A stretch of 64,000 nt of DNA from Macrostomum hystrix (lineage: Eukaryota > Animalia > Platyhelminthes): contig CATNEN010000001.1 of NCBI GenBank assembly GCA_950097015.1, positions 27,342,001-27,406,000 of the forward strand, given 5' to 3'. Shown here piece after piece: positions 9,562 to 41,000 of the stretch (positions within the stretch are counted from its first letter, which is position 1; each line of letters begins with the position of its first letter). The notes under the pieces were generated by a model, which did not search any database, was not told the origin of the DNA, and worked only from the letters and a program-made list of their open reading frames with translations. Both the position numbers and the translations under genes were made by a program.

Positions 9562-11310
9562 ATGAATTTCCTGCAGCTTGTTTTTCGGTTGCTTCTTTTG
9601 CTTCCGTTGTTGCACGACGATGTTGCTTCTGGCATCCGGATCTGCAAATCCTTACGTTTATCCAGCAAAGGCTATGAGACCCACAGAAATGTTAGTCGCT
9701 TGCAGGCGGACTTGACGGCTTTTGTAGCTGGCTGCCAGTATGTTTTCGGCGACGTTATACTGAGCAATATAGGTATTAACCAATCAACGTACGAACCGCT
9801 GGACGATGAAATTCGAGGCATGCAAACAGACTTTCTTGACTCCATTGTGGAGATCACAGGAAAAATACGGATCCTGCACGTCAGCCTTGAGCGCGTCACC
9901 TTCCGCAACTTGCGCACCATCCGAATGCACCATTTCGCTTTTGAAAAATTTAATTGGTTCCCATTTTTAATATTTAAGTCGCCGAACATGAGCAAGCTGG
10001 AATTGCCCAAGTTGACTGCTATCACAGGAAGAAATGTTAGTCTATTTGGTGAGCAAATGCAGTCTAGCTTGTACTGCTACCTGTTCTACAGCATCAACTG
10101 GACAAGCCTGCTTCAAGAACCAGGCCAGCGCTTTTTGGATGAAGTGATTTCTGTTATTACTGAACAAGGCCAAGTTCTTCAGAGAAGCTCGAACTCGCGT
10201 GTGATTGATAGGCGTACCTGCAGTCGTCAGATTTCCTGTCACGCTAATTGTACTCAAACTCCAATTTATGGCCAAAAATGCTGGTCCGACGGTGTTGATG
10301 GCTGCCAAAGTAATCATCTGTGTCGTAAGCGCAAGTGTAAAACTACGAACCTATGCTTCCATAACCCGAACACTGGCCAAGAAGACTGCTGCGACGACGA
10401 CTGTCTTGGCGGTTGCTCAAACCGGCCCAACGAGTGCTTCGCCTGTCGGAGAGGAGTATTGTTCAATGGTGTCTGTAGAGAATCCTGTCCGTCGAATACT
10501 AGTACCGCTAGTGGTAATGGCACTGGCGTGACTGTTTGGCGACAGATCGGCAACATCTGCGTAGAGAAGTGCTCACTGCCCTTTGTTGTTAGCTCTGACG
10601 GCAGGCGCTGTTTAATCGAGTGTCCGTCAGCAGAAGTCCTTATCAAAGGAGTTTGCACAAAGTGTATTGACAAAATTAGCTCTAAGCCCTGCAAATCGTG
10701 CAATGTGCCTGATTTAATGACAGACAATTTAGCGTACTTATTGAGGACTGAGCAGTGTTCGATTTGGAGGGCTGATTCTAATCTATACGTGTCCGCTAAG
10801 AATTTAAGTAGCTTAGATATCAGCAGAGCATTTGAGAATTTAGAGTACTTTTACGGAAATTTAATAGTTTTGGGATCTCAAAACTTAACAGTAAATCTCA
10901 GATCCTTACGTAATATCAAACGCGCCACTAATTCCTTAATTATTATGCGGCTCAATACGAGATACCTCGGACTAGCTAGCTTGGAATATACTCCTGACCT
11001 TATGCTTATGCATATTAGTGATCTTTGCAGAGCCTGGTATCCAAGCAATCGAATCCGAGAAATCAAAAACGTCACTAAAGAATTTCAAATTACAATACGA
11101 AACCTGAGCTTTGAAGACAGCAGCGAGATTTGCCGGAACGCTACCTGCGATGCTCAGTGCCAGGACGAATGCTGGGGACCCGGCCCAGACATGTGCGTGG
11201 CGTGTCGGAACTTCAAAGTGAACGGCCGCTGCTATGCCACCTGTGCGGAGTCGGGCAGGATTGAAGTAAATGGGAATTGTGAACTGCCTGTGCCACAGCT
11301 AATCGGCTAA
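9562..11310 (+). CDS. Secreted EGFR/insulin-receptor-like ectodomain protein, copy 1 (582 aa, intronless)
   Basis: Signal peptide MNFLQLVFRLLLLLPLL; L domain (GCQYVFGDV, FRNLRTIR, LPKLTAI, INW); furin-like Cys-rich region (CCDDDCLGGC, CFACR); second L domain (FENLEYFYGNL, LGLASL); domain IV (CDAQCQDECWGPGPDMCVACRNF). No TM or kinase; AATAAA at 11414. Confidence 0.9.
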   Translation: MNFLQLVFRLLLLLPLLHDDVASGIRICKSLRLSSKGYETHRNVSRLQADLTAFVAGCQYVFGDVILSNIGINQSTYEPLDDEIRGMQTDFLDSIVEITGKIRILHVSLERVTFRNLRTIRMHHFAFEKFNWFPFLIFKSPNMSKLELPKLTAITGRNVSLFGEQMQSSLYCYLFYSINWTSLLQEPGQRFLDEVISVITEQGQVLQRSSNSRVIDRRTCSRQISCHANCTQTPIYGQKCWSDGVDGCQSNHLCRKRKCKTTNLCFHNPNTGQEDCCDDDCLGGCSNRPNECFACRRGVLFNGVCRESCPSNTSTASGNGTGVTVWRQIGNICVEKCSLPFVVSSDGRRCLIECPSAEVLIKGVCTKCIDKISSKPCKSCNVPDLMTDNLAYLLRTEQCSIWRADSNLYVSAKNLSSLDISRAFENLEYFYGNLIVLGSQNLTVNLRSLRNIKRATNSLIIMRLNTRYLGLASLEYTPDLMLMHISDLCRAWYPSNRIREIKNVTKEFQITIRNLSFEDSSEICRNATCDAQCQDECWGPGPDMCVACRNFKVNGRCYATCAESGRIEVNGNCELPVPQLIG

Positions 11311-12072
11311 TGCGATGAAGGCTGCAACGGTCCAGGGCGTGATCCGTGTGTGAACTGAGAAGTTTCGTTTAGAACAAATCAGTGCTTCATTGCAATGAGA
11401 CTAAATTTGAGTTAATAAATGTGTACCAAGATCCCTATGATAATTCTAAGATGAAATTTTGGAACACGTTTTTTGTCTTCAATTAGTCGGTTAGTTAGCG
11501 CATGCAGTGGCACACCATCAAGGCAAGCCGTTGTGGCCATATTTGGTCCCCTGAGTTTGACGTGGCCTTTTATTGAAGCCAGTCAGGAAAATACCTTCAG
11601 CACTTGTGTTTAATGTTTATAGTGTTGATAATTTTTTTCTATAACCTTAAAAGTAGGCAAATGGACTCGCACTTCAAAATCAAATACTACTACTTACAGT
11701 AGTATTTGTCCTACTGTCACCAAATGATGTGCCATTTCTCACAGAACTCTTGCGAAATAAAAATGGCCTTCATTTCACTGCCATCAATTTGCTGAAACCA
11801 GTCTTATTACACTTGTAAAAGTTATACTTTTTCACAGCTAACAATCAAGCGGCTTAGCTTTACGCATGCATATCTTTCTGGATTGTGTAGAAATGTATGA
11901 ATTAAAGGGCTAAATTGAGAGTGCACGTTGATGCGAATTCGCCTAAGCAGGTGGCAATCAATGGTAAGTTAATGGCGAAGCCACTCGTGACAATTTCGTA
12001 TTGTCTATCTCGGCAACCGCATACACAACAACATTGACAAACGCACCCGACAAGATTTCCTCCGTTGCACAA

Positions 12073-12104
12073 ACCGTCATTGAGCAACGTTGCTCAATGA
12101 CGGT
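12073..12104. promoter_or_regulatory. Perfect 32-bp palindrome abutting a TATAAAA box upstream of Crypton copy 3
   Basis: accgtcattgagcaacgttgctcaatgacggt is its own reverse complement; TATAAAA at 12104-12110; ATTGG at ~12133. A regulatory role is inferred. Confidence 0.55.
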
Positions 12105-12159
12105 ATAAAAATAGCTCTACTTGTTCGTGAGGATTGGCTGGGCAGAGGAGAAGGATGGA

Positions 12160-13801
12160 CCATAGACAAAAAAACATTGGCTAAAGCTGACGGAAGGATG
12201 GAAGGAAGGAAGGAAGGCAAGAGTAGATAAATTGGGCTAATCTACCGGTTGACGCCTTAAACGGTGTCACCACACCAGAGTTGCGACTCTTGACGCATCT
12301 AAGTTCGGCCGATCATAGGGACGACGACGACCTTTCTCGTTTCATAGCCTACCTGGAAGATCCCGGGCAGAATGACGACGACATTCTGGGCGTCATCCTA
12401 CCGGAGGTGGGACCCGACGGTGTTCCGAAAGTTGGAGCGGAGAAGGAGATGGACGAAGCGGAGGTGCAATCGTTGCCAAAGACAACCAGAGAGCAAATGA
12501 CACAGCATGGTCAGCAGTTTGTTGACTTCATGGCCAGTGTCGGGCATGCGACCGAACGGCTCAGGAGCATGGAATCATCTGAGATTAACGAATACCTTCA
12601 ACTATTCTACTTTCGTTTGCGCAAGGCTAATGGCGAACTGTATTCTCCGGCAACCTTGGTGTGTATCCGCGCGGGTATTCAGCGGTACTTCCGACATATC
12701 CTTCAACGGAACCTCGATCTGGTGGGCGCGCCTGAGTTTGCTAAGTCCAACAGGATGCTGCGGGTGAAAGTGCGCGATTGGAACAACGCTGGTGGCGCGG
12801 TGAAGCACTTTGAGCCTATCGAGGAGGCGGACCTGGCGAAACTCCATAAGTATTTCGATCGCACCACCGGGGAGAAGCTGCAAGATGAAGTACTCTTTAC
12901 ACTTCTGTACATCCTTGGTGAACGCGGCCAAGAACATCTGAAGGCACTGCGGAGACGGCAGCTACTCATCGCCAAGGAGGATGCCGATGGTAACGCCTAC
13001 ATGGAGCTTCCGCCGTTGTCCACCAAGAACCAGAGTGCCGATCCTGTCAGGGCGAAGGGATACGTACCGAAGCAGGCGCGGATTTATGGCAAACAGCTGG
13101 AGCTGCTACAGCTATACGGCGCAACCCTGCCAGCTGAGACGAAGGATGACACCTTCTTTCCCCGGCCAATGCCCAACAAGGACGGTCAGGTCGTGTATTC
13201 GGCGAAGCAGACGCGCGGGATCAACTGGCTGGGCTCCCTGATGCAGCGCCTCAGTCGGGTCTGCACATTGTCTAAGCGGTACACCAATCATTGCATCCGC
13301 GTGACGCGGATCGCAGATCTGCGGGACGCCGGATTCACCATCAATGACATCATGAGCATCACGGGCCAGCAGAGTGAGGCGACCGTGCGACGGTACCTGT
13401 CACGCAAGCGAGATCGCACGATGAGGGATCTGGCAACGTCTGTGAGCGACGCACTGGTCCGGCATGTGGAGGGCGAATCGGAGCCCGCCCCACGGGTGGT
13501 GTCAAGTGCGACTAGCAACGTGAGCAACAGAGCCGTCAGCGTTACGGGCCGCAACTACGCTGCGGTATTTGGTGACTGCAGTTTCACCAACTGCACTTTC
13601 ACGATCGGACCGCCCCAGGAGCCCCACTGAGCATCTGCATCTGTATTTTGACAATGGACAGAGGGAGTGCAGCACATGCTGCTGTCAGTTGCGTTACTGT
13701 TTCACTTGCGCTAATTGTTTCAAATCGTTTCAATTCGTTTTTGCCTAAAATAAAGTCAAAAAGGCCAATCCGTTTGGCGTGGCCTGGCGTGGCCATAGAC
13801 A
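12160..13801 (+). mobile_element. Crypton element unit bounded by 9-bp direct repeats CCATAGACA
   Basis: CCATAGACA at 12160-12168 and 13793-13801 bracket the YR ORF and its AATAAA (~13749). Short terminal direct repeats are typical of Cryptons. Confidence 0.6.
12227..13630 (+). CDS. Crypton-type tyrosine recombinase, copy 3 (uninterrupted frame, start uncertain)
   Basis: Open from INWANLPVDALNGV (12227) to the stop; R (ERGQEH), K (TKNQ), HCIR and Y (VRRYL) present. No in-frame ATG at the homologous start; TAG at 12224 may be a splice acceptor. Confidence 0.85.
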   Translation: MNWANLPVDALNGVTTPELRLLTHLSSADHRDDDDLSRFIAYLEDPGQNDDDILGVILPEVGPDGVPKVGAEKEMDEAEVQSLPKTTREQMTQHGQQFVDFMASVGHATERLRSMESSEINEYLQLFYFRLRKANGELYSPATLVCIRAGIQRYFRHILQRNLDLVGAPEFAKSNRMLRVKVRDWNNAGGAVKHFEPIEEADLAKLHKYFDRTTGEKLQDEVLFTLLYILGERGQEHLKALRRRQLLIAKEDADGNAYMELPPLSTKNQSADPVRAKGYVPKQARIYGKQLELLQLYGATLPAETKDDTFFPRPMPNKDGQVVYSAKQTRGINWLGSLMQRLSRVCTLSKRYTNHCIRVTRIADLRDAGFTINDIMSITGQQSEATVRRYLSRKRDRTMRDLATSVSDALVRHVEGESEPAPRVVSSATSNVSNRAVSVTGRNYAAVFGDCSFTNCTFTIGPPQEPH

Positions 13802-14661: not shown

Positions 14662-14696
<35 letters not shown>

Positions 14697-14697
14697 C
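14290..14697. repeat. (TAAC)n / (TCAC)n compound microsatellite, ~400 bp
   Basis: Directly visible. Confidence 0.97.
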
Positions 14698-14699: not shown

Positions 14700-17587
14700 A
14701 AGATATCCATGGCTTCTGCGACGCCTCACAGGTAGCGTATGCCGCCTGCGTCTACCTACGATCTACGTCCGAATCAGGAGATGTTCGAGTATCCCTACTC
14801 GCAGCCAAATCTCGCGTTGCACCAGTTGCGGAAACCAGCGCGGTTGGAGCTGATGGCAGCCAAGGAACTCGCTAAACTGATCCACGAGGTTCGAAGAGAG
14901 TTCCCCGAAGTCCCGGTGACCTGTTGGAGCGACAGTATGGACTCACTGTGGTGGATAAAATCTGTGCACAAAGTCTGGAAAGCTTTTATCGAGAACAGAG
15001 TAGCATTCATCCGAACGACAGTTCCACCGGAGCAATGGAGACACTGTCCCGAAAAGGACAACCCGGCGGACGTTGCAACCCGACCAGTCGACCCGGGAGC
15101 ATTTGATGGTCGATCAGCATGGTTTCGTGGGCCTTCGTGGCTGAAAACCAACTTGGCCCGTCCAGCCAGAGTTCATTAAGAAGTCGAGCAGCGAAAATAC
15201 TGTCTATGCAACGGTGACAAGCAATGCTCTCCTGAGTCAAAGTAGGCACATTGATAACATCATTGTGCTACAGAGGTTCAGCACACTGGAAAAGTTGCTC
15301 CGTGTCACTGCGTGGGTCCTCCGCGCAGTCCAAATGTTGAAATGTCGAACACGATTTCTGGCCAGCTCTCTTACCTCCGAGGAACTACAGGCAGCCGAAC
15401 ACCTCTGGGTTAGCTCTCTGCAGGCAAAGTCCTTTACTGCTGAGATTAAATGCATCACGTATCAAACTGCTAAGACACCGTTACATCAGAATCTGCGCTT
15501 GTTTATAGACCAGGATAACGTCCTACGCTGCACTGGACGTCTAGGAGAGTCCGATCTTTCGCCAGACCATAAGTCACCTATTCTGTGCCCGACAGACGAC
15601 AACTTTCAACGGCTGCTTATCAGACATGCTCACAGGAAAGTAGCCCACGGAGGGGTAACGGCCACATTGGTACAGATTCGCGAGAAGTATTGGATGCTGA
15701 AGGCGCGACAGAATATCAAATCGGTGCTTAGGCGGTGTAACACATGCATTAGGTTGCAAGGTTTGCCATACAAAGTTCGACAGCAGTCTCAGTTACCGTC
15801 TTTTCGAATCGAGTCGCTCAGAGCATTTCAGCACGTTGGCCTCGACTACTGCGGTCCACTACTCTACCGCAGGGGGGAGGGTGACGGCCAGTACAAAGCC
15901 TATATTCTGCTATTCGTGTGTACCAGTACCAGAGCAGTCCACCTTGAAGTGGTGTCAGACTTGACCACTCAGTCATTTCTACAAAGCCTTCGCCGTTTTT
16001 GTGCTCGCCGTGGAATACCCTCCATTATTTCCGACAACTTTAAGACGTTCCACGCTGCAGCGCGTCTGCTTGATACCCGACCAGCACCGCTACAGACTAC
16101 AGATGGTCAAGAGTTCCTGACAACCAAGAGAATCAGCTGGTCATTCATTCCAGAGAGAGCCCCATGGATGGGAGGGTTCTACGAGCGTCGAGTGGGCGTT
16201 GTGAAAGCAGCACTCAAGAAGACCATTGGCAAGGCATTCCTGACTCTGGAAGAATTATCGACAGTGGCGTGTGAGATGGAAGCTGTTGTCAACTCACGCC
16301 CGCTCGGCTTTGTCGCGTCCGAAGCTCATTCAGAAGTGATCACCCGAGCCACTTCCTCGTGCTCAACCGGCTAACTAACGATCCAGAGGCTACTTCTGAG
16401 ACGTTGACAATATTGCCACTGCCAGAGAGATTGAGTCGAGTTCGGCAGACACTCAACAAATTCTGGCGAGAATTCAAGAATGAATACGTCCTAGCTCTGC
16501 GCGAGCGCTCCATTAGAGAAAGTCGAACGTCTACTCGCGAAGTCATGGTCGGTGACGTTGTATTGGTCATGGACTCCGGCGTGCCGAGGCTGCAGTGGAA
16601 GTTAGCCGTTGTGGAAGCGGTTCACCATGGTCGAGACGGTTTGGCGAGATCATGTCTTCTCCGGTTAGCGAATCCACAGCGTCGTTTCTCATCTCATTTT
16701 CGTCGTCCGGTTGCATTGCTGGTTCCTCTTGAAGTCTAAGCGCGCGCTGTCTCGCTCTTTCTCATCTTGTCTATCGCGTTTTTTCTGTTCTCCGTTCATT
16801 TCCCTCTAGTGCTTCTTTTCCGGCGTGCCGCTCTTTGTTTTTATTAGGAAGCTCAAGTTGGCGATCTTATATTCCGTCTATATTTATATTTGTTGTTATT
16901 CTGGTAAAGGCTCTTTAAACCGTGTCTCAATATTGCTTTTCAGTTTTCAGTGTCCTTTTTCTTGAGAGCTAAAAGTTTTCTCTTTTGGTGTTGGTTATGC
17001 AGTATCCTATCCCGTTGCGCCTATTGGCTACGCTATTATCTTGTTTCGTTTGTTCTGTGCACGAGTCCAAAACTTTCGCGGCTTCGACTCCTCCTGCGTA
17101 GGCTACTATTCCATTCACTTACATGTAGTCTTTAAGCTGATAATCTCTACGTATGCTCCCGATGCTATGATTTCTCGAACAGTTACTTCACTCGCTCGTG
17201 TGCATTATCCCTTTCCTTTTTGAGCCAGTGACTCGAGCATCGGTCACTGGCGGGGGAGTGTGGCGGAAAGTGCAAATTTCGATGTCTGTATTCTACATTT
17301 ACTTGTTATTTAATGTCTATTTTCTTCACTAATATTCAGCTTGAATTCTCAGACCATTATCTATTGTACGCTTATGTTTTCTCCGCTGCACCGCTCTAAC
17401 TTACGTGCATGGACTCGTCTCGATCTCTACCCTCCCAATGTGCGTGCGATTTCTCTCTTTATTTAAGCCTCTCAATTCAGTCCTCTGGACCCTTAATAAA
17501 CGTGAGCTGTAGTAAGGCGCAGGTGGAGAGAGTTTCACTCAGCAGTCAAACCACACGACAACACTCTTGTGACTTCATTCAACTACA
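14700..17587 (+). mobile_element. 5'-truncated, frameshifted BEL/Pao LTR retrotransposon
   Basis: IHGFCDASQVAYAACVYL (RNase H), RLELMAA, WSDS, WRHCP..DNPAD.ATR, integrase HRKVAHGG..CNTC, GLDYCGP, RAVHLE, PWMGGFYER, DUF5641-like FWREFKNEYVLALRER; PPT ggcgggggag at 17249-17258. Confidence 0.95.
17259..17587 (+). repeat. 3' LTR of the BEL/Pao element (TG...CA, ~329 bp)
   Basis: Begins TGTGG directly after the PPT, has TATTTAA and AATAAA, and ends ACTACA at the inverted-duplication junction. Confidence 0.75.
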
Positions 17588-18916: not shown

Positions 18917-19077
18917 CGCTAACCGACTAATTGAAGACAAAAACTTGTTCCAAAATTTCATCTTAGAATTATCATACGGATCTTGGTACACTTTTATTAA
19001 CTCAAATTTAGTCACATTGCAATGACTTCTCAGTTCACACACGGATCACGGCCTGGACCGTTGCAGCCTTCATCGCA

Positions 19078-20826
19078 TTAGCCGATTAGCTGTGGCACAG
19101 GCAGTTCACAATTCCCATTTACTTCAATCCTGCCCGACTCCGCACAGGTGGCATAGCAGCGGCCGTTCACTTTGAAGTTCCGACACGCCACGCACATGTC
19201 TGGGCCGGGTCCCCAGCATTCGTCCTGGCACTGAGCATCGCAGGTAGCGTTCCGGCAAATCTCGCTGCTGTCATCGAAGCTCAGGTTTTCTATTGTAATT
19301 TGAAATTCTTTAGTGACGTTTTTGATTTCTCGGATTCGATTGCTTGGATACCAGGCTCTGCAAATATCACTAATATCCATAAGCATAAGGTCAGGAGTAT
19401 ATTCCAAGCTAGCTAGTCCGAGGTATCTCGTATTGAGCGACATAATAATTAAGGAATTAGTGGCGCGTTTGATATTACGTAAGGATCTGAGATTTACTGT
19501 TAAGTTTTGAGATCCCAAAATTATTAAATTTCCGTAAAAGTACTCTAAATTCTCAAATGCTCTGCTGATATCTAAGCTACTTAAATTCTTAGCAGACACG
19601 TATAGAGTAGAATCGGCCCTCCAAATCGAACACTGCTCAGTCCTCAATGAGTACGCTAAATTGTCTGTCATTAAATCAGGCACATTGCACGATTTGCAGG
19701 GCTTAGAGCCAATTTTGTCAATACACTTTCTGCAAACTCCTTCGATAAGGACTTCAGCTGACGGACACTCGATTAAACAGCGCCTGCCGTCAGAGCTAAC
19801 AACAAAGGGCAGTGAGCACTTCTCTACGCAGATGTTGCCGATCTGTCGCCAAACAGTCACGCCAGTGCCATTACCACTAGCGGTGCTAGTATTCGACGGA
19901 CAGGATTTTCTACAGACACCATTGAACAATACTCCTCTCCGACAGGCGAAGCACTCGTTGGGCCGGTTTGAGCAACCGCCAAGGCAGTCGTCGTCGCAGC
20001 AGTCTTCTTGGCCAGTGTTCGGGTTATGGAAGCATAGGTTCGTAGTTTTACACTTGCGCTTACGACACAGATGATTACTTTGGCAGCCATCGACACCGTC
20101 GGACCAGCATTTTTGGCCATAAATTGGAGTTTGAGTACAATTAGCGTGACAGGAAATCTGACGACTGCAGGTACGCCTATCAATCACACGCGAGTTCGAG
20201 CTTCTCTGAAGAACTTGGCCTTGTTCAGTAATAACAGAAATCACTTCATCCAAAAAGCGCTGGCCTGGTTCTTGAAGCAGGCTTGTCCAGTTGATGCTGT
20301 AGAACAGGTAGCAGTACAAGCTAGACTGCATTTGCTCACCAAATAGACTAACATTTCTCCCTGTGATAGCAGTCAACTTGGGCAATTCCAGCTTGCTCAT
20401 GTTCGGCGACTTAAATATTAAAAATGTGAACCAATTAAATTTTTCAAAAGCGAAATGGTGCATTCGGATGGTGCGCAAGTTGCGGAAGGTGACGCGCTCA
20501 AGGCTGACGTGCAGGATCCGTATTTTTCCTCTGATCTCCACAATGGAGTCAAGAAAGTCTGTTTGCATGCCTCGAATTTCATCGTCCAGCGGTTCGTACG
20601 TTGATTGGTTAATACCTATATTGCTCAGTATAACGTCGCCGAAAACATACTGGCAGCCAGCTACAAAAGCCGTCAAGTCCGCCTGCAAGCGACTAACATT
20701 TCTGTGGGTCTCATAGCCTTTGCTGGATAAACGTAAGGATTTGCAGATCCGGATGCCAGAAGCAACATCGTCGTGCAACAACGGAAGCAAAAGAAGCAAC
20801 CGAAAAACAAGCTGCAGGAAATTCAT
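19078..20826 (-). CDS. Secreted EGFR-like ectodomain protein, copy 2 (582 aa)
   Basis: Same architecture as 9562-11310; 14 amino-acid differences counted by eye. Confidence 0.9.
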   Translation of the reverse strand: MNFLQLVFRLLLLLPLLHDDVASGIRICKSLRLSSKGYETHRNVSRLQADLTAFVAGCQYVFGDVILSNIGINQSTYEPLDDEIRGMQTDFLDSIVEIRGKIRILHVSLERVTFRNLRTIRMHHFAFEKFNWFTFLIFKSPNMSKLELPKLTAITGRNVSLFGEQMQSSLYCYLFYSINWTSLLQEPGQRFLDEVISVITEQGQVLQRSSNSRVIDRRTCSRQISCHANCTQTPIYGQKCWSDGVDGCQSNHLCRKRKCKTTNLCFHNPNTGQEDCCDDDCLGGCSNRPNECFACRRGVLFNGVCRKSCPSNTSTASGNGTGVTVWRQIGNICVEKCSLPFVVSSDGRRCLIECPSAEVLIEGVCRKCIDKIGSKPCKSCNVPDLMTDNLAYSLRTEQCSIWRADSTLYVSAKNLSSLDISRAFENLEYFYGNLIILGSQNLTVNLRSLRNIKRATNSLIIMSLNTRYLGLASLEYTPDLMLMDISDICRAWYPSNRIREIKNVTKEFQITIENLSFDDSSEICRNATCDAQCQDECWGPGPDMCVACRNFKVNGRCYATCAESGRIEVNGNCELPVPQLIG

Positions 20827-21302
20827 TTTCTTAAATCACCTCTGCAGTGCTTTCTTTCTATGTTGATTCCCAGCTCTGAAGTTCTTCACTTCTTTAAATA
20901 CCAATTGAATTAAATGCGACTCGTCGAAAAGAAAATTCTTTCACAGGCAAATTTTTCAACAAAAAATAACACCACTTTCCACATTTTGCCCGTTTCTCTG
21001 ACTCTACAGAAATACTTGCACAAAACATTTTTCTGTCGCTGGTTTTTTTTTCAAAAAAAGATATATAAAATCAATAAATAATCACGAGTCAAATGACTTT
21101 AGCTTGCTATTTTGGCTCTTAAATTCCAGAAGTTAATTGTGCTCCAACTCGGGCAATTCTCAGTGAAAGAAGCGACGAAAGACTAAGTTAAAGTGAAGCA
21201 TTTTTGTTTTAAAAAATAAGAAAATGCAAGCCTACGGTTCTATTTATAGCATTAGAAGCATTTAAAGACATTGTGGTCTTCCTGAAGGAGTTTGACAATG
21301 TT

Positions 21303-21344
<42 letters not shown>

Positions 21345-21989
21345 CCATGTAGCCGGCTAGGAGGGGAGACAGCCCGCTGCGCAGCTGAGCGAGCTGCCTG
21401 CGAGCGCTTCGCCCAAGCTTTCTCTGCTCAGTACGGATGTCTGGCCAGCGCCCAACCGCTCTGTTTGCCACAGGAAAAAGCAGGAGATATCCGAGATCTG
21501 CTGAGGCTGTCACGTTAGAGGACGCCCACTTCTTTGAGGAAACTCAGCACAGCAAAATGCTCGGAAAACACAGCCGCGGGCTCCATGCGAGGTCCCTGGG
21601 AGTGCCTGGAAGCAGCAGTGGTGAAGAGACAGGGCCGGGTAGTTCATTAACAGGTGAGCGGCCTTCTCCTCATCCTCGAGTAGTATGCAAGAGGGGCTTT
21701 CTGGGACAAACGCCTTCGCAGCCTCCATAATCCACAATATATTAGCTTTCTTATTCCCGAAAAGATCAGGAAAAAGCTTACCGGCCTCTCACAAAATCTG
21801 TCTCCTTTGTTCCAATAAAAATTTCCGCAGCCTATTCCATCACAAAAAATCTGTCTCTATACTCCAGTCTCCCAGCCCTGCAAAAAGTGTTTGAAGACAA
21901 TTAAATTAGCGCCAAATTTCCAATTCCAAAACTCATGATCCCAAACCTAGGGTGCTTATCCTCCGAAAAAATTCTCTATAATTCTCAAA

Positions 21990-23510
21990 GGACCCGGATG
22001 CAACAGAACTCCAACAGCCGCTTCTTCCAGTTTGATGGTCAGCATTCGCTGCTGTGCGACACTTCCAGCCACTATCATTGACCAGTCGACCCAGATTTGC
22101 TCCAGCAACCGCTCATCCGACACTTCCATCAACTCGGCCACTACGGGGTCCGCAAGACCGCCAGCCTGTTGACAACCCGATACTTCTGGCCCAACATGCG
22201 GGACGCAATCAAGAGGTATTGCCGAGCGTGCGAAACCTGCCAACGAAGCAAAATCGGACGCCACACGACGGCCGGCAGTTCCGCGTTTGACCTACCGTCT
22301 AACAGACTCGAAGTCGTTCACATCGACATTGTCGGTCCGCTCCCAGTACCAGACAGAAAGTACGACGTCTCCTGCGGGCTGACCCCTCGATACATGCTCA
22401 CCATGATCGACCGCAGCACCAGCTGGATCGAGGCCACGCCGCTTGAGTCCGTCACCGCCGAGAGCGTAGCATCCGCATTCATCTCCACCTGGGTCTCGCG
22501 CTTCGGAGTGCCGCTGTAGATTGTCACCGACCGAGGACCACAATTCGAAGCTGAGTTCTTCAGCCGAGTCGCCAAAGTCGTCGGATTCCATCGACTGCGA
22601 ACGACAGGCTACCACCCTCAGACAAACGGCAAAATTGAACGAGCACATCGAACGCTGAAAGCCATCCTGAAGGCTCGTGGGGATTCCTGGTTGGAGAGCC
22701 TACCGCTAGCACTCCTCGCGATGCGCATCTCTCCGAACGAAAACGGCATTAGCGCCTTCACTCGCCTAATTGGAGAACATCCGATGATGCCCCGCATCTT
22801 GACGACAGAGGACCTCACGCCGGAGACCATTCGACTTCGCCTGGACGACCTGATGGACGACGCGAGACCTCCACTTAATCGGCCAACGTACATCCTGAGC
22901 GACCTCAAGACAGCCGAGAAGGTATGGGTCCGAGTCGACCGCACCCGGAAGCCATTGGAAGCACCGTATCAAGGCCCCTACCCGGTTGTGAAACGCCTAC
23001 CGAAGTTCTTCATCATCGCGACAGCCGCAGGACGCCAGGAATCCGTCTCCATCGACCGCCTCAAACCTTGGCGAACCGCGCCGACGCCTGCAGCTGGCAA
23101 CCAGAGGGTTCGACCGACAGAAGCGACGCAGGATCAGCAGCCATCCACGGCGCGACACGAGTCACCACCGAGCACCAGGACGGACGACACTGTTGACGCC
23201 TCAACAACTTGGGAGGAAGCCTCCCGACAGCCTGAGTCAGAGACGACAAGGACACAAACATCACCAGTAAGCACTCGAAGTGGCCGGAAAGTGCAATACA
23301 AACCTAAAAATGACTATTATTATTTCTAACTGGCAAACCGACAAGTAGACATAACTCTTGTACTGTACATTCGCATTCAACTTTTAGTTGCCTAACACTG
23401 CATTTCATGCGTCTGCAGCTTCGGCATCCCATACCGTAATCTCCAGTTTACCCGTGTGCATATTAATTCACCATCAGGACTCCATCTTCCGCGGGGGGAC
23501 TGATGTAGTG
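21990..23510 (+). mobile_element. Gypsy/Ty3 integrase fragment with 3' UTR, PPT and probable LTR start
   Basis: Mirror of 7135-8400 but complete to STRSGRKV...YYF*; PPT gcggggggac then TGTAGT at 23504; same in-frame stop after GVPL. Confidence 0.92.
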
Positions 23511-25112
23511 ACATTAATTCGCGAAACTTCTGTACGTTTGAAACTCCTCATACTCATGCGCTTGCATCTAATAATAAAAAGCTTGTTTTAAACTTAAATT
23601 GTTTTAAACAAATTAAATTTGTTTTACCGTACAGTATATTTCTAGAAACTTCCGAAAACACTAAAATACACTATAAATATACTGCACCGGATCCAGCAAT
23701 AATCAACCCTTTCTGATCTCATACGAGACTCAACAAACAACACAGAAAACCACCGCCTAGCTCTTAATTACTCGCGAACTCGCGACGATAAAACCCCGCT
23801 ACAGAAGCATAAATTGTCGAGAGGAAAGCAAATATTATCGAAAGAAAGGCAATTTTTCGTGAGGAAAGCATGATTTATCAAGTGGCTTGCAAAAATCATC
23901 GAGGGGTAGCACTATTTATCGAAGGGGTCGCATGTTTATTGTGGGGTAGCATGATATATTGAGTAATAGTCTATCAGCAACAGCTAAAAACGTAAGCAAA
24001 AGTTTTTTGTTATTGTTTTTATTTTTTTTGGGTACAACTAACAGTTAATAGTAAAAGATATTGATTAGCTACTGTCAAAGCGAAAAAGTTTTTGCTTAAT
24101 CACTCTTTTCGCTCTGAGAAAAGAAAGCAGCAGCAAGTTGTATTCGATACAAAACTGAGGAAAGAATTTTCGAGCATATCTGCCAGCGTTTATAGATTCA
24201 GAAATATAATAAATTTCACGTTATTTTACTTTCAGAATTTCGCATTTTTTCATATTTATCATGTAAATTGCATACAATTTGCGGGCAAAGGCATTACGAG
24301 CCGTAGATATCTAGGTAATGCCTTGATTTCTCGAAGAGATTGTATGAGATTTCCAGGTCATGGCATAATACTTTCAGCTAGGGTAAATTTTTGAAGACGA
24401 TAGAATGATCTATTAAAGAGGGTAGCATGATTTATCGAAGGGGTAGCATGATTTTATAGGGGGGAGCATGAATTGTCGAGAGGGAAGCACGAACTGTTAA
24501 GGGGAAGCATGAAATATCGAGGGGAAGAATGAATAATAGATAGAAAAACATGACCGATCGAAGGGGAGCATGAATGGTCGAGTGGGTAGCATAAATTATT
24601 GAGGTGGAAGCATCAATTGTCAAGGGGAAGCATGAAATGGCGAGGGAAAAGTGAATTATCGAAGGGAATTAGCATGACTTTTCGAGGGGGAAGCATGAAA
24701 TACCGACTAAAGAGCATGAATTATTGAGGGGTAGCATGGTTCATCAAGAAGTAGCTAAATTATCGTTAAGATAAAATGATTTTTCAAGGTATAGTCCAAA
24801 TTTTTGGGTGTAGCATAAATTATGGAGGGGAGAGCATGACTTATTGAGAGGGAAGCATGAATTCTCAAGGGGAAGCATGACTAATCAAGAGGGGAAGCAT
24901 GAATTTTCGAGGGCGAATAATATACTCAGCAACAGTGAAAAGTTCCACCCTCCAAGCGAGATGGAATTTTTCTCACTTATTGTGAGTGACGCAACTTGCG
25001 ACACGCAGCGAAGCTTATTGTCACTTGGGGGCTTGGGTCTGTGCAATGGTACAAAACTGCGTAACTTCAAGAGGACAAATTTTAAGTCTAATCCACACAC
25101 ACGATTTCAAAA

Positions 25113-28745: not shown

Positions 28746-28967
28746 TTATGCTACGACCTCGAAAATGCATGCTTTTTCATTAATAATTCATTCTTTCCCG
28801 TAAAAATTGCATGGCTCCCCCTCAATAGTTCATGCTAGCTCCTCGACATTTAACGCTTTCCCCTCGATAATTCAAGCTACCCAGTTGATAATAATAGTTT
28901 TCCTTCAATAATTCATGGCACATCGTCGATGTTGCAAGCTTTCTCTTCGATAATTTATGCTCTACCC

Positions 28968-34900: not shown

Positions 34901-34998
34901 GACAAATCTTGCTACCCACTCAATAATTCATGCTACCACTTTGTTATATCATGCTATCCCTGGACAAATCTTGCTACCCACTCAATAATTTATGCTAC
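28968..34998. repeat. 62-bp satellite, ~97 near-identical copies
   Basis: ORF track repeats every 62 bp; unit catgctaccactttgttata(t/c)catgctatccctggacaaatcttgctacccactc(a/g)ataatt, made of three ~21-bp subunits. Confidence 0.99.
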
Positions 34999-34999
34999 C

Positions 35000-35870
35000 A
35001 ACTTAATATATGCTTTACCTACGATAATTCAGGCTACCCGGTTGATAATTCATACATTTCCCACGTTAATTTATACTTTCACTCGTTAATACATGCTACC
35101 CCTCAATAATTCATTCTACCCTCTCTACAAATCATGCAATTTTGTCGATAATTCATGCTTCTCATCGATAACTCATGCTTCGCCCTAAATAATTCGTGCT
35201 TTTCCCTCGCTAAATCATGCTTCTTCTGCATAATTGATAGTTTTCCTTCCGTTAATTCATGTTTTCATCTCGATAATTTATACCTAACCTCAATTACTTA
35301 TTATACCAATCAATAAAGAATATTACCCCTCGATAATTGATGCTTCCCACATGAAAATGCATGCTTTTCCCTTGAAAAATTATACAAGCCAATTGATTAT
35401 TCATGCTTCTCATCGATAATTTGTGCTAACCCATCGATAATTCATGCTGCCACTTCGAAAAGTCATGCTTTCCCCTCGATAATTCATACTTTTTCCTCGT
35501 TATTTCATGCTTCCCTAGACAATTAATGCTTTTCCATAGATAATAAATGTTTCCTTTGTGATACTTAATGTTTTCTTCTTGATAATTATTGTTTCCTACC
35601 GGATAATTCATGCTCCCAGATCGATTAATAATGGTATCCCCTGGAAACATCATGCTACTCCCTGGAAATCCCATGCTATACCCCGGAAGTCTCTTGCCTT
35701 TTTCTGGAAATCTCATGCTTTTTCCTGGAAATCTCATGCTTTTTCCTGGAAATCTCATGCTATTCCCTGAATATGCCATGCTATACCCTGGAAATGTCAT
35801 GCTTTCCCTTAGAAATGCCTTCTAACGGAAATATAATGCTTTTCTTTATAATCCACATGCCATTCACCTC
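35000..35870. repeat. Degenerate 21-bp monomers flanking the 62-bp satellite
   Basis: Diverged tcatgct...cgataat units, then cctggaaatctcatgc units. Confidence 0.8.
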
Positions 35871-37128: not shown

Positions 37129-37649
37129 CTGAAAGATTTTTTGTTCTGTTACGATTCTATTACATTGTCTTGCCAGTACAAATTAGTAAATACCTTGTAG
37201 CCAGGAAAAGCCTGTTATACGTGTATTATGGTTAAGGTTTTCTTCATGTTCTTACCATAAAAATGGGCCTACTGACATTCGCTGACAGTGCTGAAGTTCC
37301 GAATAACAGATTTCTGCATAACAGATGTCCTATATATATGGATTGCTTTTATGTGAGTGGATACTGGCGGGTTCTATATGATGGATTTGCAGATTTTATA
37401 CTGCAAAATATCCTGCTTCCAGTTGCTTTGGTGTGGTGTGACTTTCGAGACAGTCAACCATAAGCCAGCCAGGTGGCAATACTTAGTTCTACTGTAAGTA
37501 TTGAATATCGACCTCACAAGAAGGTTCATCAATTTTGATTCGTTGCGCAGAGCATAAAAACTGTTGTCCTCGGCTTTTGAGTCTGAGGTGCTTTTTTATT
37601 TTTGACGGCAGCAATGCTTGCGCAGGCCTCAATAGCAACTATCTGCTGA

Positions 37650-37987
37650 CAGCCCAAAGAGTCAGTCAAGCGTCGTACATTGGCTGCTTCGTTGACAACA
37701 CTGCTTTCAAGCAGGACCTCAACGGAATGAGAAACGTGACCGAGCTTGGCAACATCTTCTCTGGCATCGGGGGCTACACGTCTGTTGGCATGACGCGGAG
37801 CCTCTGCGCCGATCTGTGCTCAATGGGCGGCTTCCCCTACATGGGGCTGCAGTTCGGTCAGGAGTGCTTCGGCGGCCGGACCTACGGCTCGCAGGGAGCT
37901 GCCAGCGAGGACGACAGCAGCACGGCGATACGGCGCAGAATTGCCGCAATAATGATCGCAACTCTGTGTACGCACTCACCTATCCAG
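37650..37987 (+). pseudogene. WSC-domain exon with frameshifting deletion
   Basis: SYIGCFVD...MTRSLCADLCSMGGFPYMGLQFGQECFGG.TYG; the C-terminal part (GDTAQNC...RNSVYALTYP) is in another frame and ends at a phase-1 donor CCAG|GTAAAT, like the exon at 1-157. Confidence 0.7.
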
Positions 37988-38054
37988 GTAAATCCTGTCT
38001 TCCTCTCACAGCTGTGTTCGCACTCACCTATCCAGGTAAATCCTGCCTTCCTCT

Positions 38055-41000
38055 CACTATAAACTAAAAAACGAAAAACACTCAAGTGCTGAAGGTCTTT
38101 TCCTGACTGGCTTCAATAAAAGGCGACGTCAAACTCAGGGGACCAAATATGGCCACAACGGCATGCCTTGATGGTGTTCCACTGCATGTGCTAACCGACT
38201 AATTGAAGACAAAAAACGTGTTCCAAAATTTCATCTTAGAGTTATCATAGGGATCTTGGTACACATTTATTAACTCAAATTGAGTCTCATTGCAATGAAG
38301 CACTGATTTGTTCTAAACGAAACTTCTCAGTTCACACACTGATCACGCCCTGGACCGTTGCAGCCTTCATCGCATTAGCCGATTAGCTGTGGCACAGGCA
38401 GTTCACAATTCCCATTTACTTCAATCCTGCCCGACTCCGCACAGGTGGCATAGCAGCGGCCGTTCACTTTGAAGTTCCGACACGCCACGCACATGTCTGG
38501 GCCGGGTCCCCAGCATTCGTCCTGGCACTGAGCATCGCAGGTAGCGTTCCGGCAAATCTCACTGCTGTCATCAAAGCTCAGTTTTTGTATTTTAATTTTA
38601 AGTTCTTTAGTGACTTTCTGGATTTCTCGGATTCGATTGCTTGGATACCAGGCTCTGCAAAGATCACTAATATGCATAAGCACAAGGTCAGGAGTATATT
38701 CCAAGCTAGCTAGTCCGAGGTATCTCGTCTTGAGCGACATAAGAAATAAGGAATTAGTGACACGTTTGATATTACGAAGAAATCGGAGATTTATTGTTAA
38801 GTTTTGAGATCTCGCAATTACTAAATTTCCGTAAAAGTACTCTAAATTCTCAAATGCTCTAAAGTTATCTGAGCTACTTAAAATATCAGCAGACACGTGT
38901 AGAGAAGAATAGGCCCTCCAAATCGAACACTGCTCAGTCCTCAATGAGTATGCTAAATTGCCTGACATTATATAGGACACATTGCACGATTTACAGGGCT
39001 TAGAGCTAATTTTGTCAATGCACTTTGTGCAAACTCCTTCGATAGGGACTTCTGCTGATGGACACTCGATTAAACAGCGCCTGCCGTCAGAGCTAATAAA
39101 AAAGGGCAGTGAGCACTTCTCTACGCAGATGTTGCCGATCTGTCGCCAAACAGTCACGCCAGTGCCATTACCACTAGCGGTACTAGTATTCGACGGACAG
39201 GATTTTCTACAGACACCATTGAACAATACTCCTCTCCGACAGGCGAAGCACTCGTTGGGCCGGTTTGAGCAACCGCCAAGGCAGTCGTCGTCGCAGCAGT
39301 CTTCTTGGCCAGTGTTCGGGTTATGGAAGCATAGGTTCGTAGTGTTACACTTGCGCTTACGACACAGATGATTACTTTGGCAGCCATCGACACCGTCGGA
39401 CCAGCATTTTTGGCCATAAATTGGAGTTTGAGTACAATTAGCGTGACAGGAAATCTGACGACTGCAGGTACGCCTATCAATCACACCCGAGCTCGAGCTT
39501 CTCTGAAGAACTTGGCCTTGTTCAGTAATAACTGAAAACACTTCATCAAAAAAGCGCTGGCCTGGTTCTTGAAGCAGGCTTGTCCAGTTGATGCTGTAGA
39601 ACAGGTAGCAGTACAAGCTAGACTGCATTTGCCCACCTAGACGAACATTCATCCTTGTGATAGCAGTCAACTTGGGCAATTCCAGCTTGCTCATGTTCGG
39701 CGACATTACAAATGTGTACCTATCAAATTTTTCAAAAGCGAAATCTCGGATGGCGCGTAAGTTGCGGAAGGTGACGCGCTCAAGGTTGACGTGGTCGATC
39801 CATATTTTTCCACTGATCTCCACAATGGAGTCAAGAAAGTCAGTTTGCATGCCTCGAATTGCATCGTCCAGCGGTTCGTACGTTGATTGGTTAATACCTA
39901 TATTGCTCAGTCTTACATCGCCGAAAACATACTGGCAGCCAGCTACATAAGCCGCCAAGTCCGCCTGCAAGCGACTAACATTTCTGTGGGTCTCATAGCC
40001 GTCGCTGGAGATTTCTAAGGTTTTGCAGATCCGGATGCCAGAAGCAACATCGTCGTGTAACAACGGAAGCAAAAGAAGCAACCGAAAAACAAGCTGCAGG
40101 AAATTCATTTTCTTAAATCACCTCTGCAGTGCTTTCTTTCTATTTTGATTCCCAGCTCTGAAGTTTTTCACTTCTTTAAATACGAATTGAATTAAGTACG
40201 ACTCGTTGGAAATATAATTCTTTCGCAGGCAAATTATTCAGCAAAAAATAACACCACTTTCCACATTTTGCCCGTTTCTCTGACTCTACAGAAAAACTTA
40301 CTCAAAACATTTTCCTGTCGCTTGCTTTTCTACGAGCTATAAAGACGCATAAAATCAATCAATAATCACGAGTCGAATAACTTTAGCTTGCTTTCTTTTT
40401 GGCTCCTAAATTCCAGAAGTTAATTGTGCTCCAACTCTGGCAATTCTCAGTGAAAGAAGCGACGAAAGACAAGACTTTTCTTTGTTTGTTTATTTGTTTA
40501 AAAAAAGAAAATGCAAGCCTACGGTTCTATTTATAGCATTAGAAGCATTTAAAGACATTGTGGTCTTCCTGAAGGAGTTTGAAAATGTTTGTTTGTGTGT
40601 GTGTGTGTGTGTGTGCGTGTGTGTGTGTGTGTGCGGGCCATGCAGCCGGCTAGGAGGGGAGACAGCCCGCTGCGCAGCTGAGCGAGCTGCCTGCGAGCGC
40701 TTCGCCCAAGCTTTCTCTGCTCAGTACGGATGTCTGGCCAGCGCCCAACCGCTCTGTTTGCCACAGGAAAAAAGCAGGAGATATTTGAGATCTGCTGAGG
40801 CTGTCACGTTTGAGGACGCCCACTTCTTTGAGGAAACTCAGCACAGCAAAATGCTCGGAAAACACAACCGCGGGCTCCGTGCGAGGTCCCTGGGAGTGCC
40901 TGGAAGCAGCAGTGGTGAAGAGACAGGGCCGGGTAGTTCATTAACAGGTGAGCGGCCTTCTCCTCATCCTCGAGTAGTATGCAAGAGGGGCTTTCTGGGA

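Follow-up and report, generated by a model that had tools for sequence, protein, structure and literature searches.

A family of kinase-less EGFR-type ectodomain genes with diversified L-domain faces in Macrostomum hystrix: a putative repertoire of soluble binders

The window, a 64,000-nucleotide stretch of the Macrostomum hystrix genome, carries three related genes, each within a duplicated segment. An earlier note had described them as intact, intronless open reading frames (ORFs) of 582, 582 and 577 aa, and our analysis recovered all three as such at the positions below.

9562..11310, + strand: copy 1 coding sequence, 582 aa, TAA stop, putative secreted EGFR-ectodomain protein
19078..20826, - strand: copy 2 coding sequence, 582 aa, 98% identity to copy 1
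38375..40108, - strand: copy 3 coding sequence, 577 aa, 88% identity to copy 1
5649..11494: left arm of an inverted segmental duplication, with copy 1, 97-98% identity to the right arm
18919..25017: right arm of the inverted segmental duplication, with copy 2
38076..41267: third duplicated unit, with copy 3, 92-93% identity to the copy 1 and copy 2 units

The segmental duplications carrying the three copies are recent. The unit shared among paralogs consists of the gene with approximately 300-420 bp of upstream and 160-400 bp of downstream sequence and has ragged ends; homology stops 160-400 bp past the stop codon and reaches 600 bp or beyond in a few pairs. Transposon relics around the copies comprise a tyrosine-recombinase-like ORF, an rve integrase and a DDE_3 transposase, and the genes are embedded among such relics and satellites. 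Two ORFs, one tyrosine-recombinase-like and one for an integrase, lie in the spacer of about 7.4 kb between the inverted arms.

Pfam, hydropathy, alignment to EGFR and an AF2 model agree on the architecture that had been proposed for these proteins, namely signal peptide, L1, furin-like region, L2 and partial domain IV without transmembrane (TM) segment or kinase. In copy 1, the signal peptide spans residues 1-24, L1 ~25-215, the furin-like region (CR1) ~216-390, L2 ~391-525 and the partial domain IV (CR2) 526-582. Pfam searches of the three ORFs returned Recep_L_domain (E ~1e-12), Furin-like (E ~1e-13) and profile positions 1-38 only of GF_recep_IV (E ~1e-6, 0.4 bit below the gathering score), and found no kinase domain. 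L2 is too diverged for Pfam and was recovered via profile alignment to EGFR and the AF2 model. The sole hydrophobic peak in the hydropathy profiles is N-terminal and signal-like, a TM segment and a hydrophobic C-terminus both being absent; the signal peptide was called from hydropathy and homology only. Copies 1 and 2 differ at 24 nucleotides, 13 of them in L2 and 10 of those 13 non-synonymous, while changes between copies 3 and 1 cluster at strand positions of L1 and L2. Every L-domain motif pair quoted in the earlier note is present in the translations, the indels between copies preserve the frame as described, and the near-invariance reported for signal peptide and domain IV amounts to 0-1 and zero (CR2) changes, respectively, among the three copies. 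The focus of variation on L1 and L2 is far beyond chance and is repeated in 14 further intact paralogs elsewhere in the genome.

All of these coding sequences end in much the same way. The same TAA inside domain IV terminates 11 aligned paralogs as well as copy 2, and the C-terminus is identical in 16 of the 17 intact paralogs. Past this stop lie codons whose homolog in the full-length receptor is the next disulfide module, followed by candidate gene signals:

11311..11358, + strand: domain IV fossil after the copy 1 stop, 15 in-frame codons (C-D-E-G-C-N-G-P-G...), then a second stop
19030..19077, - strand: domain IV fossil after the copy 2 stop
38327..38374, - strand: domain IV fossil after the copy 3 stop
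11414..11419, + strand: AATAAA of copy 1, 103 nt past the stop, candidate poly(A) signal
38266..38271, - strand: AATAAA of copy 3, 103 nt past the stop
18993..18998, - strand: AATAAA of copy 2, 79 nt past the stop, the distance being shortened by a deletion
9488..9495, + strand: TATA-like TATTTAAA of copy 1, at -74, candidate core promoter
20893..20900, - strand: TATA-like box of copy 2, at -74
40175..40182, - strand: TATA-like box of copy 3, at -74

The AATAAA at the +103 position is kept in 8 of 11 paralogs examined. The TATA-like box belongs to an upstream stretch that is conserved across the examined paralogs, above all in the 75 nt directly preceding the ATG.

The earlier note had suggested collecting all paralogs, and a search of the M. 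hystrix genome (Machtx_v2) gave 17 intact ones, the window trio included, and at least five decayed members. The intact ORFs encode 572-586 aa with 76-100% protein identity to copy 1 (n = 17); the decayed members are L007, with one stop, and fragments (L019, L020/L028, L029/L030 and one on C15). Public protein collections contain neither the family proteins nor the receptor of M. hystrix itself, so that absence of the family from them is uninformative, and we found no published description of this M. hystrix family. A tree of ectodomains places the family as sister group of the flatworm EGFR clade, and the family's ectodomains share 45-47% identity with the 1087-aa M. hystrix receptor. EGFR relatives in this genome are all intronless single ORFs; the membrane-bound ones are full receptors and kinase-less TM forms, and three C3 genes of 692-749 aa have kept the TM segment and lost the kinase. 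The sister position, the one common TAA and the in-frame domain IV fossil bear out the idea of an EGFR ectodomain redeployed without TM or kinase and trace the family to a flatworm EGFR-type receptor gene truncated by a single nonsense codon within domain IV. The copies form local clusters of tandem or inverted segmental duplications; paralogs have been born by local segmental duplication and lost by decay. They evidently also exchange L1 and L2 segments, as segment trees conflict with 99-100% support and L011 and L013 have identical L1 at an L2 pS of 0.145. Such exchange yields new L1-by-L2 combinations.

We then fitted codon models to the four segments, the site-wise tests that had been proposed along with the claim of diversifying selection. 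The M1a/M2a statistics were 141.9 (L1), 141.1 (L2), 36.6 (CR1, mostly at domain boundaries) and 1.25 (CR2), and the M7/M8 statistics were 144.7 (L1), 130.8 (L2) and 58.2 (CR1); both tests thus reached high significance in L1 and L2 but were null in CR2. The selected class in L1 and L2 has an omega of 4-6 on 14-18% of sites, 41-68% of sites have an omega of ~0.03-0.08, and CR2 has an omega of 0.43 with zero selected sites. Under M0, our own codon code matched the IQ-TREE fit for L2 (omega 1.259, kappa 1.44), with log-likelihoods within 1 unit in all four segments. A FUBAR-like grid with synonymous rate variation placed 22 (L1), 31 (L2) and 0 (CR2) sites above a posterior of 0.9, and site-wise alpha was not elevated at most selected codons. 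Site models assume a single tree, which recombination between paralogs violates, and this is answered in part by two tree-free tests, cross-validated by defining hypervariable columns from other paralogs only. Non-synonymous divergence in these columns was 2.4-5 times the L-domain synonymous divergence and that of the duplicated non-coding flanks. For copy 3 compared with copies 1 and 2, hypervariable dN was 0.31-0.33, as against a gene dS of 0.064-0.071 and a flank K of 0.03-0.07. Hypervariable pN exceeded L-domain pS in 136 of 136 pairs and in 8 of 8 independent ones, averaging 0.48 against a synonymous divergence of 0.13-0.16, in all divergence classes including the youngest pairs. All 38 cysteines are invariant family-wide, N-glycosylation sequons are conserved, and the CR1 core, including segment 305-335 (equivalent to the EGFR dimerization arm), combines a near-invariant protein sequence with low dS. 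These codon patterns indicate strong diversifying selection on ~40-60 positions that occur in alternation on the large beta-sheet of L1 and on that of L2, the surfaces with which EGFR clamps EGF, and strong purifying selection on the scaffold of 38 Cys, CR1 core and CR2 stub.

The selected sites alternate along the strands and, in each L domain, are enriched six-fold in a single sheet (P = 2e-6). Five human EGFR contacts to EGF, Y45, L69, L382, Q384 and I438, correspond to selected N69, H106, I435, L437 and M481. The variable sites map to one L-domain face, as had been claimed, rather than being scattered. The profile alignment to human EGFR spans the whole length, and the best PDB sequence matches are LET-23 and human EGFR. 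The AF2 model (pLDDT 82, pTM 0.78) is closest to extended EGFR-family ectodomains, i.e., unliganded and Spitz-bound Drosophila EGFR, HER2 and ligand-bound ErbB4. The N-terminal strand contacts of EGFR (L14, Q16-G18) align to invariant family residues in an ambiguous part of the alignment, and the family has lost the loops that carry V350, D355 and F412. Because part of the EGF contacts is not preserved as a site, the ligand is not necessarily EGF-like. Ordinary receptor paralogs differ from one another at the selected positions too, so this surface is generally the least constrained.

Taken together, we favor, with a probability of roughly 0.7, a lineage-specific M. hystrix family of kinase-less EGFR ectodomains with diversified L faces that forms a putative soluble binder repertoire. 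The proteins would enter the secretory pathway through their predicted N-terminal signal peptide, fold as an extended (untethered) EGFR-like ectodomain and bind a protein ligand either on the L1 and L2 faces or between them. Specificity may be particular to each paralog, with the invariant Cys-rich stem as a common handle; paralog-specific faces on a common stem would make the family a repertoire of soluble binders or traps. The residue changes at EGFR ligand-contact sites point to many specificities in this set. As targets, endogenous EGF-like or other signalling ligands and non-self or mating-partner molecules are equally tentative candidates, and targets of another kind are only slightly less favored.

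Pairing with membrane EGFRs through the CR1 dimer-arm region and the CR2 stub, which would silence or tune them, is an unlikely alternative role; the L faces would then be changing because the proteins do not need, or are losing, the ability to bind ligand. Truncated ErbB ectodomains can inhibit receptors, and the near-invariant, low-dS CR1 core with its arm equivalent fits such a role. However, loss of binding predicts that omega approaches 1, yet the values of 4-6 fall precisely on the contact positions, and the arm equivalent bears two conserved sequons, N312 and N319, which would probably hinder back-to-back pairing. The L-domain differences could also be ancient cassettes, with gene conversion homogenizing the rest of the gene between paralogs and no positive selection involved. 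Segment exchange is clear, synonymous divergence is uneven, being higher in L1 (0.21) and L2 (0.13) than in CR1 (0.11) and CR2 (0.045), and the receptor paralogs L021 and L024 have a dS of 0.29 in the ectodomain versus 0.065 in the kinase half. Within the L domains themselves, however, hypervariable pN far exceeds synonymous divergence in all 136 pairs, hypervariable dN in the window trio is ~5 times as high as divergence in the duplicated non-coding flanks, and most selected codons show no increase in alpha. Retaining old variants against homogenization would itself need selection for diversity. This explanation is thus largely refuted, and we consider it very unlikely.

It is similarly improbable, and slightly more so, that the ORFs represent just the 5' exons of longer genes, joined by splicing or readthrough to TM or kinase exons or to a membrane anchor, which would make the proteins receptors instead of soluble, even though the genome has membrane-bound relatives. 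All relatives are intronless, the common TAA is followed by the decayed in-frame domain IV module, a second stop and AATAAA at +103, and paralog homology mostly ends 160-400 bp past the stop. A tblastn search with the receptor found no TM remnant in the 64-kb window or in the 1.5 kb flanking each of the 17 loci, and no kinase remnant in the window; the flanks gave one weak, opposite-strand kinase-like match near L018. The transposon relics flanking the copies would suit decoy receptors spread as cargo of a Maverick/Polinton-like or other element, and viruses often carry soluble receptor decoys. This is highly improbable, as the shared unit is only the gene with short ragged flanks, a Maverick hallmark occurs in 0 of the 10 largest neighboring ORFs tested, and the copies sit in local clusters of tandem or inverted segmental duplications. 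Relaxed constraint, with truncated, (near-)non-functional copies drifting as young pseudogenes still open by chance, could draw on the at least five decayed members and the setting among transposon relics and satellites. It is scarcely credible given 17 open ORFs of 572-586 aa with every one of 38 Cys invariant, 41-68% of codons at an omega of ~0.03-0.08, a CR2 omega of 0.43 and conserved promoter-like and poly(A)-like signals; an omega of 4-6 at a defined subset of sites is impossible under neutrality.

The putative binder family shares domain order and disulfide framework with EGFR/ErbB ectodomains (human, Drosophila, LET-23 and the M. hystrix/M. lignano EGFR paralogs). It differs from them in lacking domain IV beyond the first modules, TM segment and kinase, in being multi-copy, and in having contact positions that are positively selected rather than conserved. 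Soluble kinase-less ErbB isoforms such as sEGFR, p85-sErbB3 and herstatin arise by alternative processing and sequester ligand or block receptors. These are products of the receptor gene itself, whereas the family consists of separate, nonsense-fixed and diversified genes in ~20 copies. Similarly, C. elegans DAF-2B is a kinase-less soluble receptor isoform that sequesters ligand (PMC9262388). Another expanded kinase-less group built on receptor L domains is the C. elegans IRLD (insulin/EGF-receptor L-domain) family, in which HPA-1 and HPA-2 act as modifiers of EGF signalling, part of the membership maps to hyper-divergent regions, and a function in sequestering ligand has been suggested (PMC9262388). 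The nematode parallel drawn in the earlier note holds as analogy but not as common descent. The origins are independent; the flatworm family adjoins the flatworm EGFR clade and keeps the complete L1-CR1-L2 of EGFR proper, and IRLD homology to EGFR/InsR is weak. Our literature search found no report of site-wise positive selection on the ligand face of IRLD proteins.

Planarian nou-darake is a kinase-less receptor-like ectodomain proposed to be a ligand trap. The same has been proposed for FGFRL1 (PMC8622657). Both differ from the family in being membrane-anchored single genes with an immunoglobulin-type ectodomain and no known diversifying selection, and the C3 genes are closer to this type than the family is. 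To our knowledge, the EGFR ectodomain has not been reported as the scaffold of a germline-diversified binder family. Families such as leucine-rich-repeat VLRs, snail FREPs and KIR/MHC-type systems combine a constant scaffold and a variable binding face, with hypervariable residues on a concave or flat sheet, with birth-and-death, segment exchange and omega >1 on that face. As far as germline paralog sequences of one genome alone can indicate, the M. hystrix family resembles them in its solenoid/repeat scaffold, hypervariable sheet residues, birth-and-death, segment exchange and omega >1, but has the EGFR ectodomain as its scaffold.

The earlier note had described three intact open reading frames (ORFs) in the window, and all three were found at the coordinates it quoted with lengths of 582, 582 and 577 aa; every motif pair that it listed is present in the translations.

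Family ORFs in the window, from the ORF listing and translation
9562-11310, + strand: copy 1, 582 aa
19078-20826, - strand: copy 2, 582 aa
38375-40108, - strand: copy 3, 577 aa

Pfam matched Recep_L_domain and Furin-like in the copies, and GF_recep_IV only over profile positions 1-38 of 132, just under the gathering score; L2 was recovered by profile alignment and in an AF2 model. The domain order, L1, furin-like Cys-rich region (CR1), L2 and the mere start of domain IV (CR2), is that of the EGFR/ErbB ectodomain superfamily. No kinase domain was detected by Pfam in the three copies, and hydropathy analysis gave a single N-terminal signal-like peak (KD 1.5-1.95) and a non-hydrophobic C-terminus, with no transmembrane (TM)-grade segment beyond that peak. 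The ORFs end at a shared TAA within domain IV, and the claim that these proteins lack both a TM helix and a kinase holds.

All three copies sit within segmental duplications: an inverted pair (5649-11494 versus 18919-25017, 97-98% identity) and a third duplicated unit at 38076-41267, which is 92-93% identical. The copies are surrounded by transposon relics (a tyrosine-recombinase-like ORF, an rve integrase and a DDE_3 transposase) and satellite arrays. The 7.4 kb spacer of the inverted duplication carries an ORF at 12281-13630 (+) with weak matches to QRICH1 and a phage-integrase SAM-like N-terminal domain, compatible with a putative Crypton-type tyrosine recombinase, and an ORF at 15214-16374 (+) with Integrase_H2C2 and rve domains, a retroelement integrase. 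Adjoining the right arm of the duplication, on its outer side, is a 171-aa ORF (25600-26115, +) with a DDE_3 transposase domain (E = 3e-13). A 175-aa ORF (37535-38062, +) with a match to the carbohydrate-binding WSC domain (E = 1.7e-8) is convergent with copy 3 and lies ~300 bp from its 3' end. Copies 2 and 3 are separated by a satellite (28800-35200) of about 100 62-bp units that are 95-96% identical; its GC is low (0.39) and its GC skew very strong (-0.47). A repeat at 28050-28800 with a 42-bp period gives rise to spurious ORFs in both orientations. The GC skew is reversed (+0.42) in a second satellite (52890-56120), whose period is based on 20 bp with registers of 40, 60 and 80 bp, and shorter tandem arrays occur at 26587-27545 (~24-25 bp period) and 50055-50474 (20 bp). 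A Maverick or mobile-cargo reading was unsupported in this window.

A six-frame search of the Machtx_v2 genome (220,453,370 bases in 42 contigs), the Macrostomum hystrix assembly of inbred line SR1 (PMC10468722), yielded 17 intact paralogs of 572-586 aa with 76-100% protein identity to copy 1, together with at least five decayed copies, one carrying a stop and several split or partial. The putative signal peptide is the same in all intact paralogs and the C-terminus in 16 of the 17. The window occupies positions 27342001-27406000 of contig C1 (27.56 Mb). Of the intact copies, 13 are located within 3 Mb of the end of this contig, two on C15 (2.1 Mb) and two on C39. No TTAGGG repeats were found at the end of C1, and no CCCTAA-type repeats at the end of C1 or the start of C15; a telomere-type CCCTAA array of 102 copies is present within the first 3 kb of C39 (locus L036, G000:C39:1-3000), not at its very first bases. 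Beyond this genome, an exhaustive HMMER search against 1.84 billion representatives returned no relative closer than two M. lignano receptors, and a word-indexed protein search gave no match at E <= 0.001 among the at most 8000 length-matched candidates compared. By exact look-up in the protein collection the three proteins were missing, as was the genome's own receptor, so their absence there says nothing about expression. Our literature search found no paper describing such a family.

The same genome encodes two further groups of EGFR-like genes, both with 45-47% ectodomain identity to the family. The receptors on contig C9 (loci L021-L024 and L031; G000:C9:1.03-1.09 Mb) are tandem, intronless, full-length EGFR genes of 1087 aa with L1, furin-like, L2, domain IV, TM and kinase, and an M. 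lignano 'receptor protein-tyrosine kinase' shares 72% identity with the full-length C9 receptor. Three of them are near-identical; the fourth shows a dS of 0.29 in the ectodomain and of only 0.065 in the TM-kinase half, a contrast consistent with a homogenised kinase cassette. Contig C3 carries three kinase-less, TM-anchored genes of 692-749 aa (loci L025-L027 and L032; G000:C3:4.45-4.81 Mb), which retain a full domain IV, a TM helix and a short tail.

In the ectodomain tree the family is monophyletic and sister to a clade of the C9 receptor, a C3 gene and the M. lignano ortholog PAA79361 (support 96%). A second M. lignano receptor falls outside, and placement inside the flatworm EGFRs is supported at 96-100%. 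Taken at face value, the family stem predates the hystrix-lignano split, a placement that long-stem acceleration could distort. The crown radiated recently (paralog dS 0.05-0.2), and the C3 genes arose from the C9 receptor independently and later (support 100%). The AF2 model (pLDDT 82, pTM 0.78) matched Drosophila EGFR (3i2t) in Foldseek with E = 1.9e-21 and gave TM scores of 0.5-0.6 to extended forms; overall, it is most like extended (untethered) ErbB ectodomains. A PDB search with L2 alone as a single sequence returned nothing useful, and the profile of alignment A1, used below for the match to human EGFR, succeeded.

How the ectodomain came to stand alone can be read at its 3' end. The tblastn alignment of the receptor continues across the family stop codon, which is TAA in all paralogs aligned (11 plus copy 2) and is followed by 15 in-frame codons, in which the next disulfide module of domain IV can still be recognised as a relic, and then by a second stop. 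Because the TAA is shared and the domain IV relic persists in frame beyond it, the soluble form, as judged from sequence, is the product of one ancestral nonsense mutation and not of a splice site. Eight of the 11 copies examined carry an AATAAA 103 nt 3' of the stop, paralog homology mostly stops 160-400 bp downstream of the stop, and upstream conservation extends for ~330 nt, including a TATA-like TATTTAAA at -74. Neither the window nor the 1.5-kb flanking sequence of the 17 loci yielded TM or kinase remnants, except for one weak kinase-like match near locus L018 (3569-4036, downstream on the opposite strand; tblastn match to the receptor kinase region, 22% identity, E = 3e-5), which is probably an unrelated kinase fragment. 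Together, the stop relic, the AATAAA, the ends of homology, the upstream block and the missing TM and kinase remnants argue for the family genes being compact, self-contained transcription units.

Selection was analysed with a self-written codon-likelihood module (GY94, F3x4, pruning), which agreed with IQ-TREE: the L2 M0 estimates were identical (omega 1.259, kappa 1.44) and log-likelihoods were within 1 unit for all four segments. The segment trees conflict with 99-100% support, and the paralogs at loci L011 and L013, for example, are identical in L1 and have a pS of 0.145 in L2. As the paralogs recombine, a separate tree was used for each segment. M0 omega was 1.02 for L1, 0.59 for CR1, 1.26 for L2 and 0.43 for CR2. 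The M1a/M2a statistics were 141.9, 36.6, 141.1 and 1.25, respectively, with an M2a omega2 of 4.3 on 18% of L1 sites and of 5.8 on 14% of L2 sites. The site-wise comparison of M7 with M8 on the collected paralogs, suggested in the earlier note as a check on diversifying selection, was strongly significant in both L domains, with statistics of 144.7 for L1 and 130.8 for L2 and of 58.2 for CR1, there on 2.4% of sites near the domain borders. Both model comparisons gave P < 1e-28 in L1 and L2, with CR2 as the negative control. Synonymous divergence differs between segments (L1 0.21, L2 0.13, CR1 0.11, CR2 0.045). In a FUBAR-like grid with site-specific synonymous rates, 22 sites in L1, 4 in CR1, 31 in L2 and none in CR2 reached a posterior > 0.9, and alpha was not raised at most of the sites selected in this way. 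The uniformity of CR1 and CR2 is probably upheld in part by gene conversion.

Two tree-free, cross-validated tests bear on whether the variable positions are ancient patches. For the first, the 14 paralogs located elsewhere in the genome served to define 45 hypervariable columns (at least five residue types). At these columns, dN between copy 3 and copies 1/2 was 0.31-0.33, against a gene-wide dS of 0.064-0.071 and a divergence of 0.03-0.07 in the duplicated non-coding flanks. Between copies 1 and 2, dN was 0.046 versus 0.006-0.009 in the flank (two large upstream blocks); a short downstream stretch of 159 nt diverges by 0.032 in this pair. In the second, leave-pair-out test, pN at hypervariable columns exceeded the L-domain-only pS in 136 of 136 pairs, with a distance ratio of 2.4-4.8 across every divergence class, and the independent pairs all pointed in the same direction (8/8, Wilcoxon P = 0.004). 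On both tests, the ancient-patch reading fails to account for this family. Diversifying selection is robust to synonymous rate variation and, at least in part, to recombination, as given by the grid, the per-segment trees and the tree-free tests. The rapid change is also not that of drifting pseudogenes, which are excluded by all 38 cysteines being invariant across the 17 paralogs, by several conserved N-glycosylation sequons (two of them, N312 and N319, where EGFR has its dimerisation arm), by 41-68% of codons evolving at an omega of ~0.03-0.08 and by the 17 open frames.

The strictly selected sites (n = 38) comprise 21 in L1, 13 in L2 and four at the CR1 borders, with none in the signal peptide or CR2. 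In the AF2 model they occupy alternating positions on long parallel strands, with core-facing positions under purifying selection between them, and one sheet per L domain is enriched in them (odds ratio 6.2, P = 2e-6). The faces were mapped via DSSP strands and the EGFR alignment rather than from 3D coordinates. For the latter, the A1 profile was aligned to full-length human EGFR (7syd), an identical profile being rebuilt locally (1178 states, same consensus), and EGF-contact residues were taken from PMC8838133; human EGFR was the reference because the LET-23 paper lists no residues contacting LIN-3. EGFR residues Y45, L69, L382, Q384 and I438 correspond to the selected N69, H106, I435, L437 and M481, and L98 to a variable, non-significant position; five of the six strand-borne EGF contacts are thus hypervariable and positively selected. 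Strand enrichment and contact mapping both agree with the earlier proposal that variable sites gather on one L-domain face. The loops bearing V350, D355 and F412 are absent from the family, so that three loop-borne contacts are deleted, and the N-terminal contact strand aligns, ambiguously, to conserved residues. The loss of several EGF-contact loops, together with the sheer rate of change, makes one conserved EGF ligand for the family unlikely. The selected columns are variable in other genes too: the odds ratio is 7.5 for the C3 trio and 6.5 for diverged receptor paralogs. Ectodomain-wide dN/dS is 0.9-1.3 for the C3 genes and 0.44 for the receptors. The C3 trio is near-identical in L1 in the strand segments inspected and strongly diverged in L2, with differences at the same L2 face positions.

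Altogether, these genes form an EGFR-derived ectodomain family without a kinase that is specific to this lineage and evolves by birth and death, with a frozen scaffold, positive selection on the canonical ligand faces and swapping of L1 and L2 between paralogs. The proteins are predicted from their sequence to be secreted, and since the domain IV tether is missing the ectodomain would adopt an extended conformation. Protein ligands would then be bound on the L1 and L2 sheets with a specificity that differs by paralog, and the invariant stem would serve as a handle common to all of them. The targets may be endogenous growth factors, in a decoy or buffer role as proposed for HPA-1/2 and DAF-2B (PMC9262388) and FGFRL1 (PMC8622657), or foreign or partner-derived molecules. 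It is tempting to speculate, at a probability of roughly one in five, that the family is a germline-encoded combinatorial repertoire of soluble recognition molecules on an EGF-receptor scaffold, with two hypervariable heads (L1 and L2), shuffled independently, on a constant, glycosylated Cys-rich stem through which every member would dock to the same partner. The worm would use it to recognise non-self, microbes or mating partners; this would be an immune-like or sexual-conflict system of a kind undescribed for EGFR-type proteins.

If expressed and secreted, the family would give M. hystrix a repertoire of soluble binders with differing specificities. In an animal that regenerates so well, such a repertoire could serve as a tunable buffer for growth-factor signals; in a species that inseminates hypodermically and whose reproductive genes evolve fast, it could also be a recognition system. 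The M. hystrix genome paper provides positional and adult-versus-hatchling RNA-Seq tables by transcript id (PMC10468722). With genome, RNA-seq and RNAi/ISH tools published for Macrostomum, the family is directly testable. It also provides a natural mutational scan of the face with which EGFR binds its ligand and an example of L1 and L2 modules being shuffled among paralogs, and its ligand-clamping surfaces show one of the clearest signatures of diversifying selection obtainable from paralogs (omega 4-6; 136/136 tree-free comparisons).

Kinase-less receptor ectodomains are otherwise known as single decoys or splice isoforms, and an L-domain family has expanded in nematodes. In M. hystrix the ectodomain of EGFR proper has been turned into a separate, amplified gene family. 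Unlike functional EGFR, its members have no conserved EGF-binding site, no TM helix and no cytoplasmic tyrosine kinase. The nematode IRLD family is alike in its manner of working, being kinase-less, built on receptor L domain(s) and expanded (PMC9262388), but common descent is not supported, as the flatworm family nests with flatworm EGFRs.
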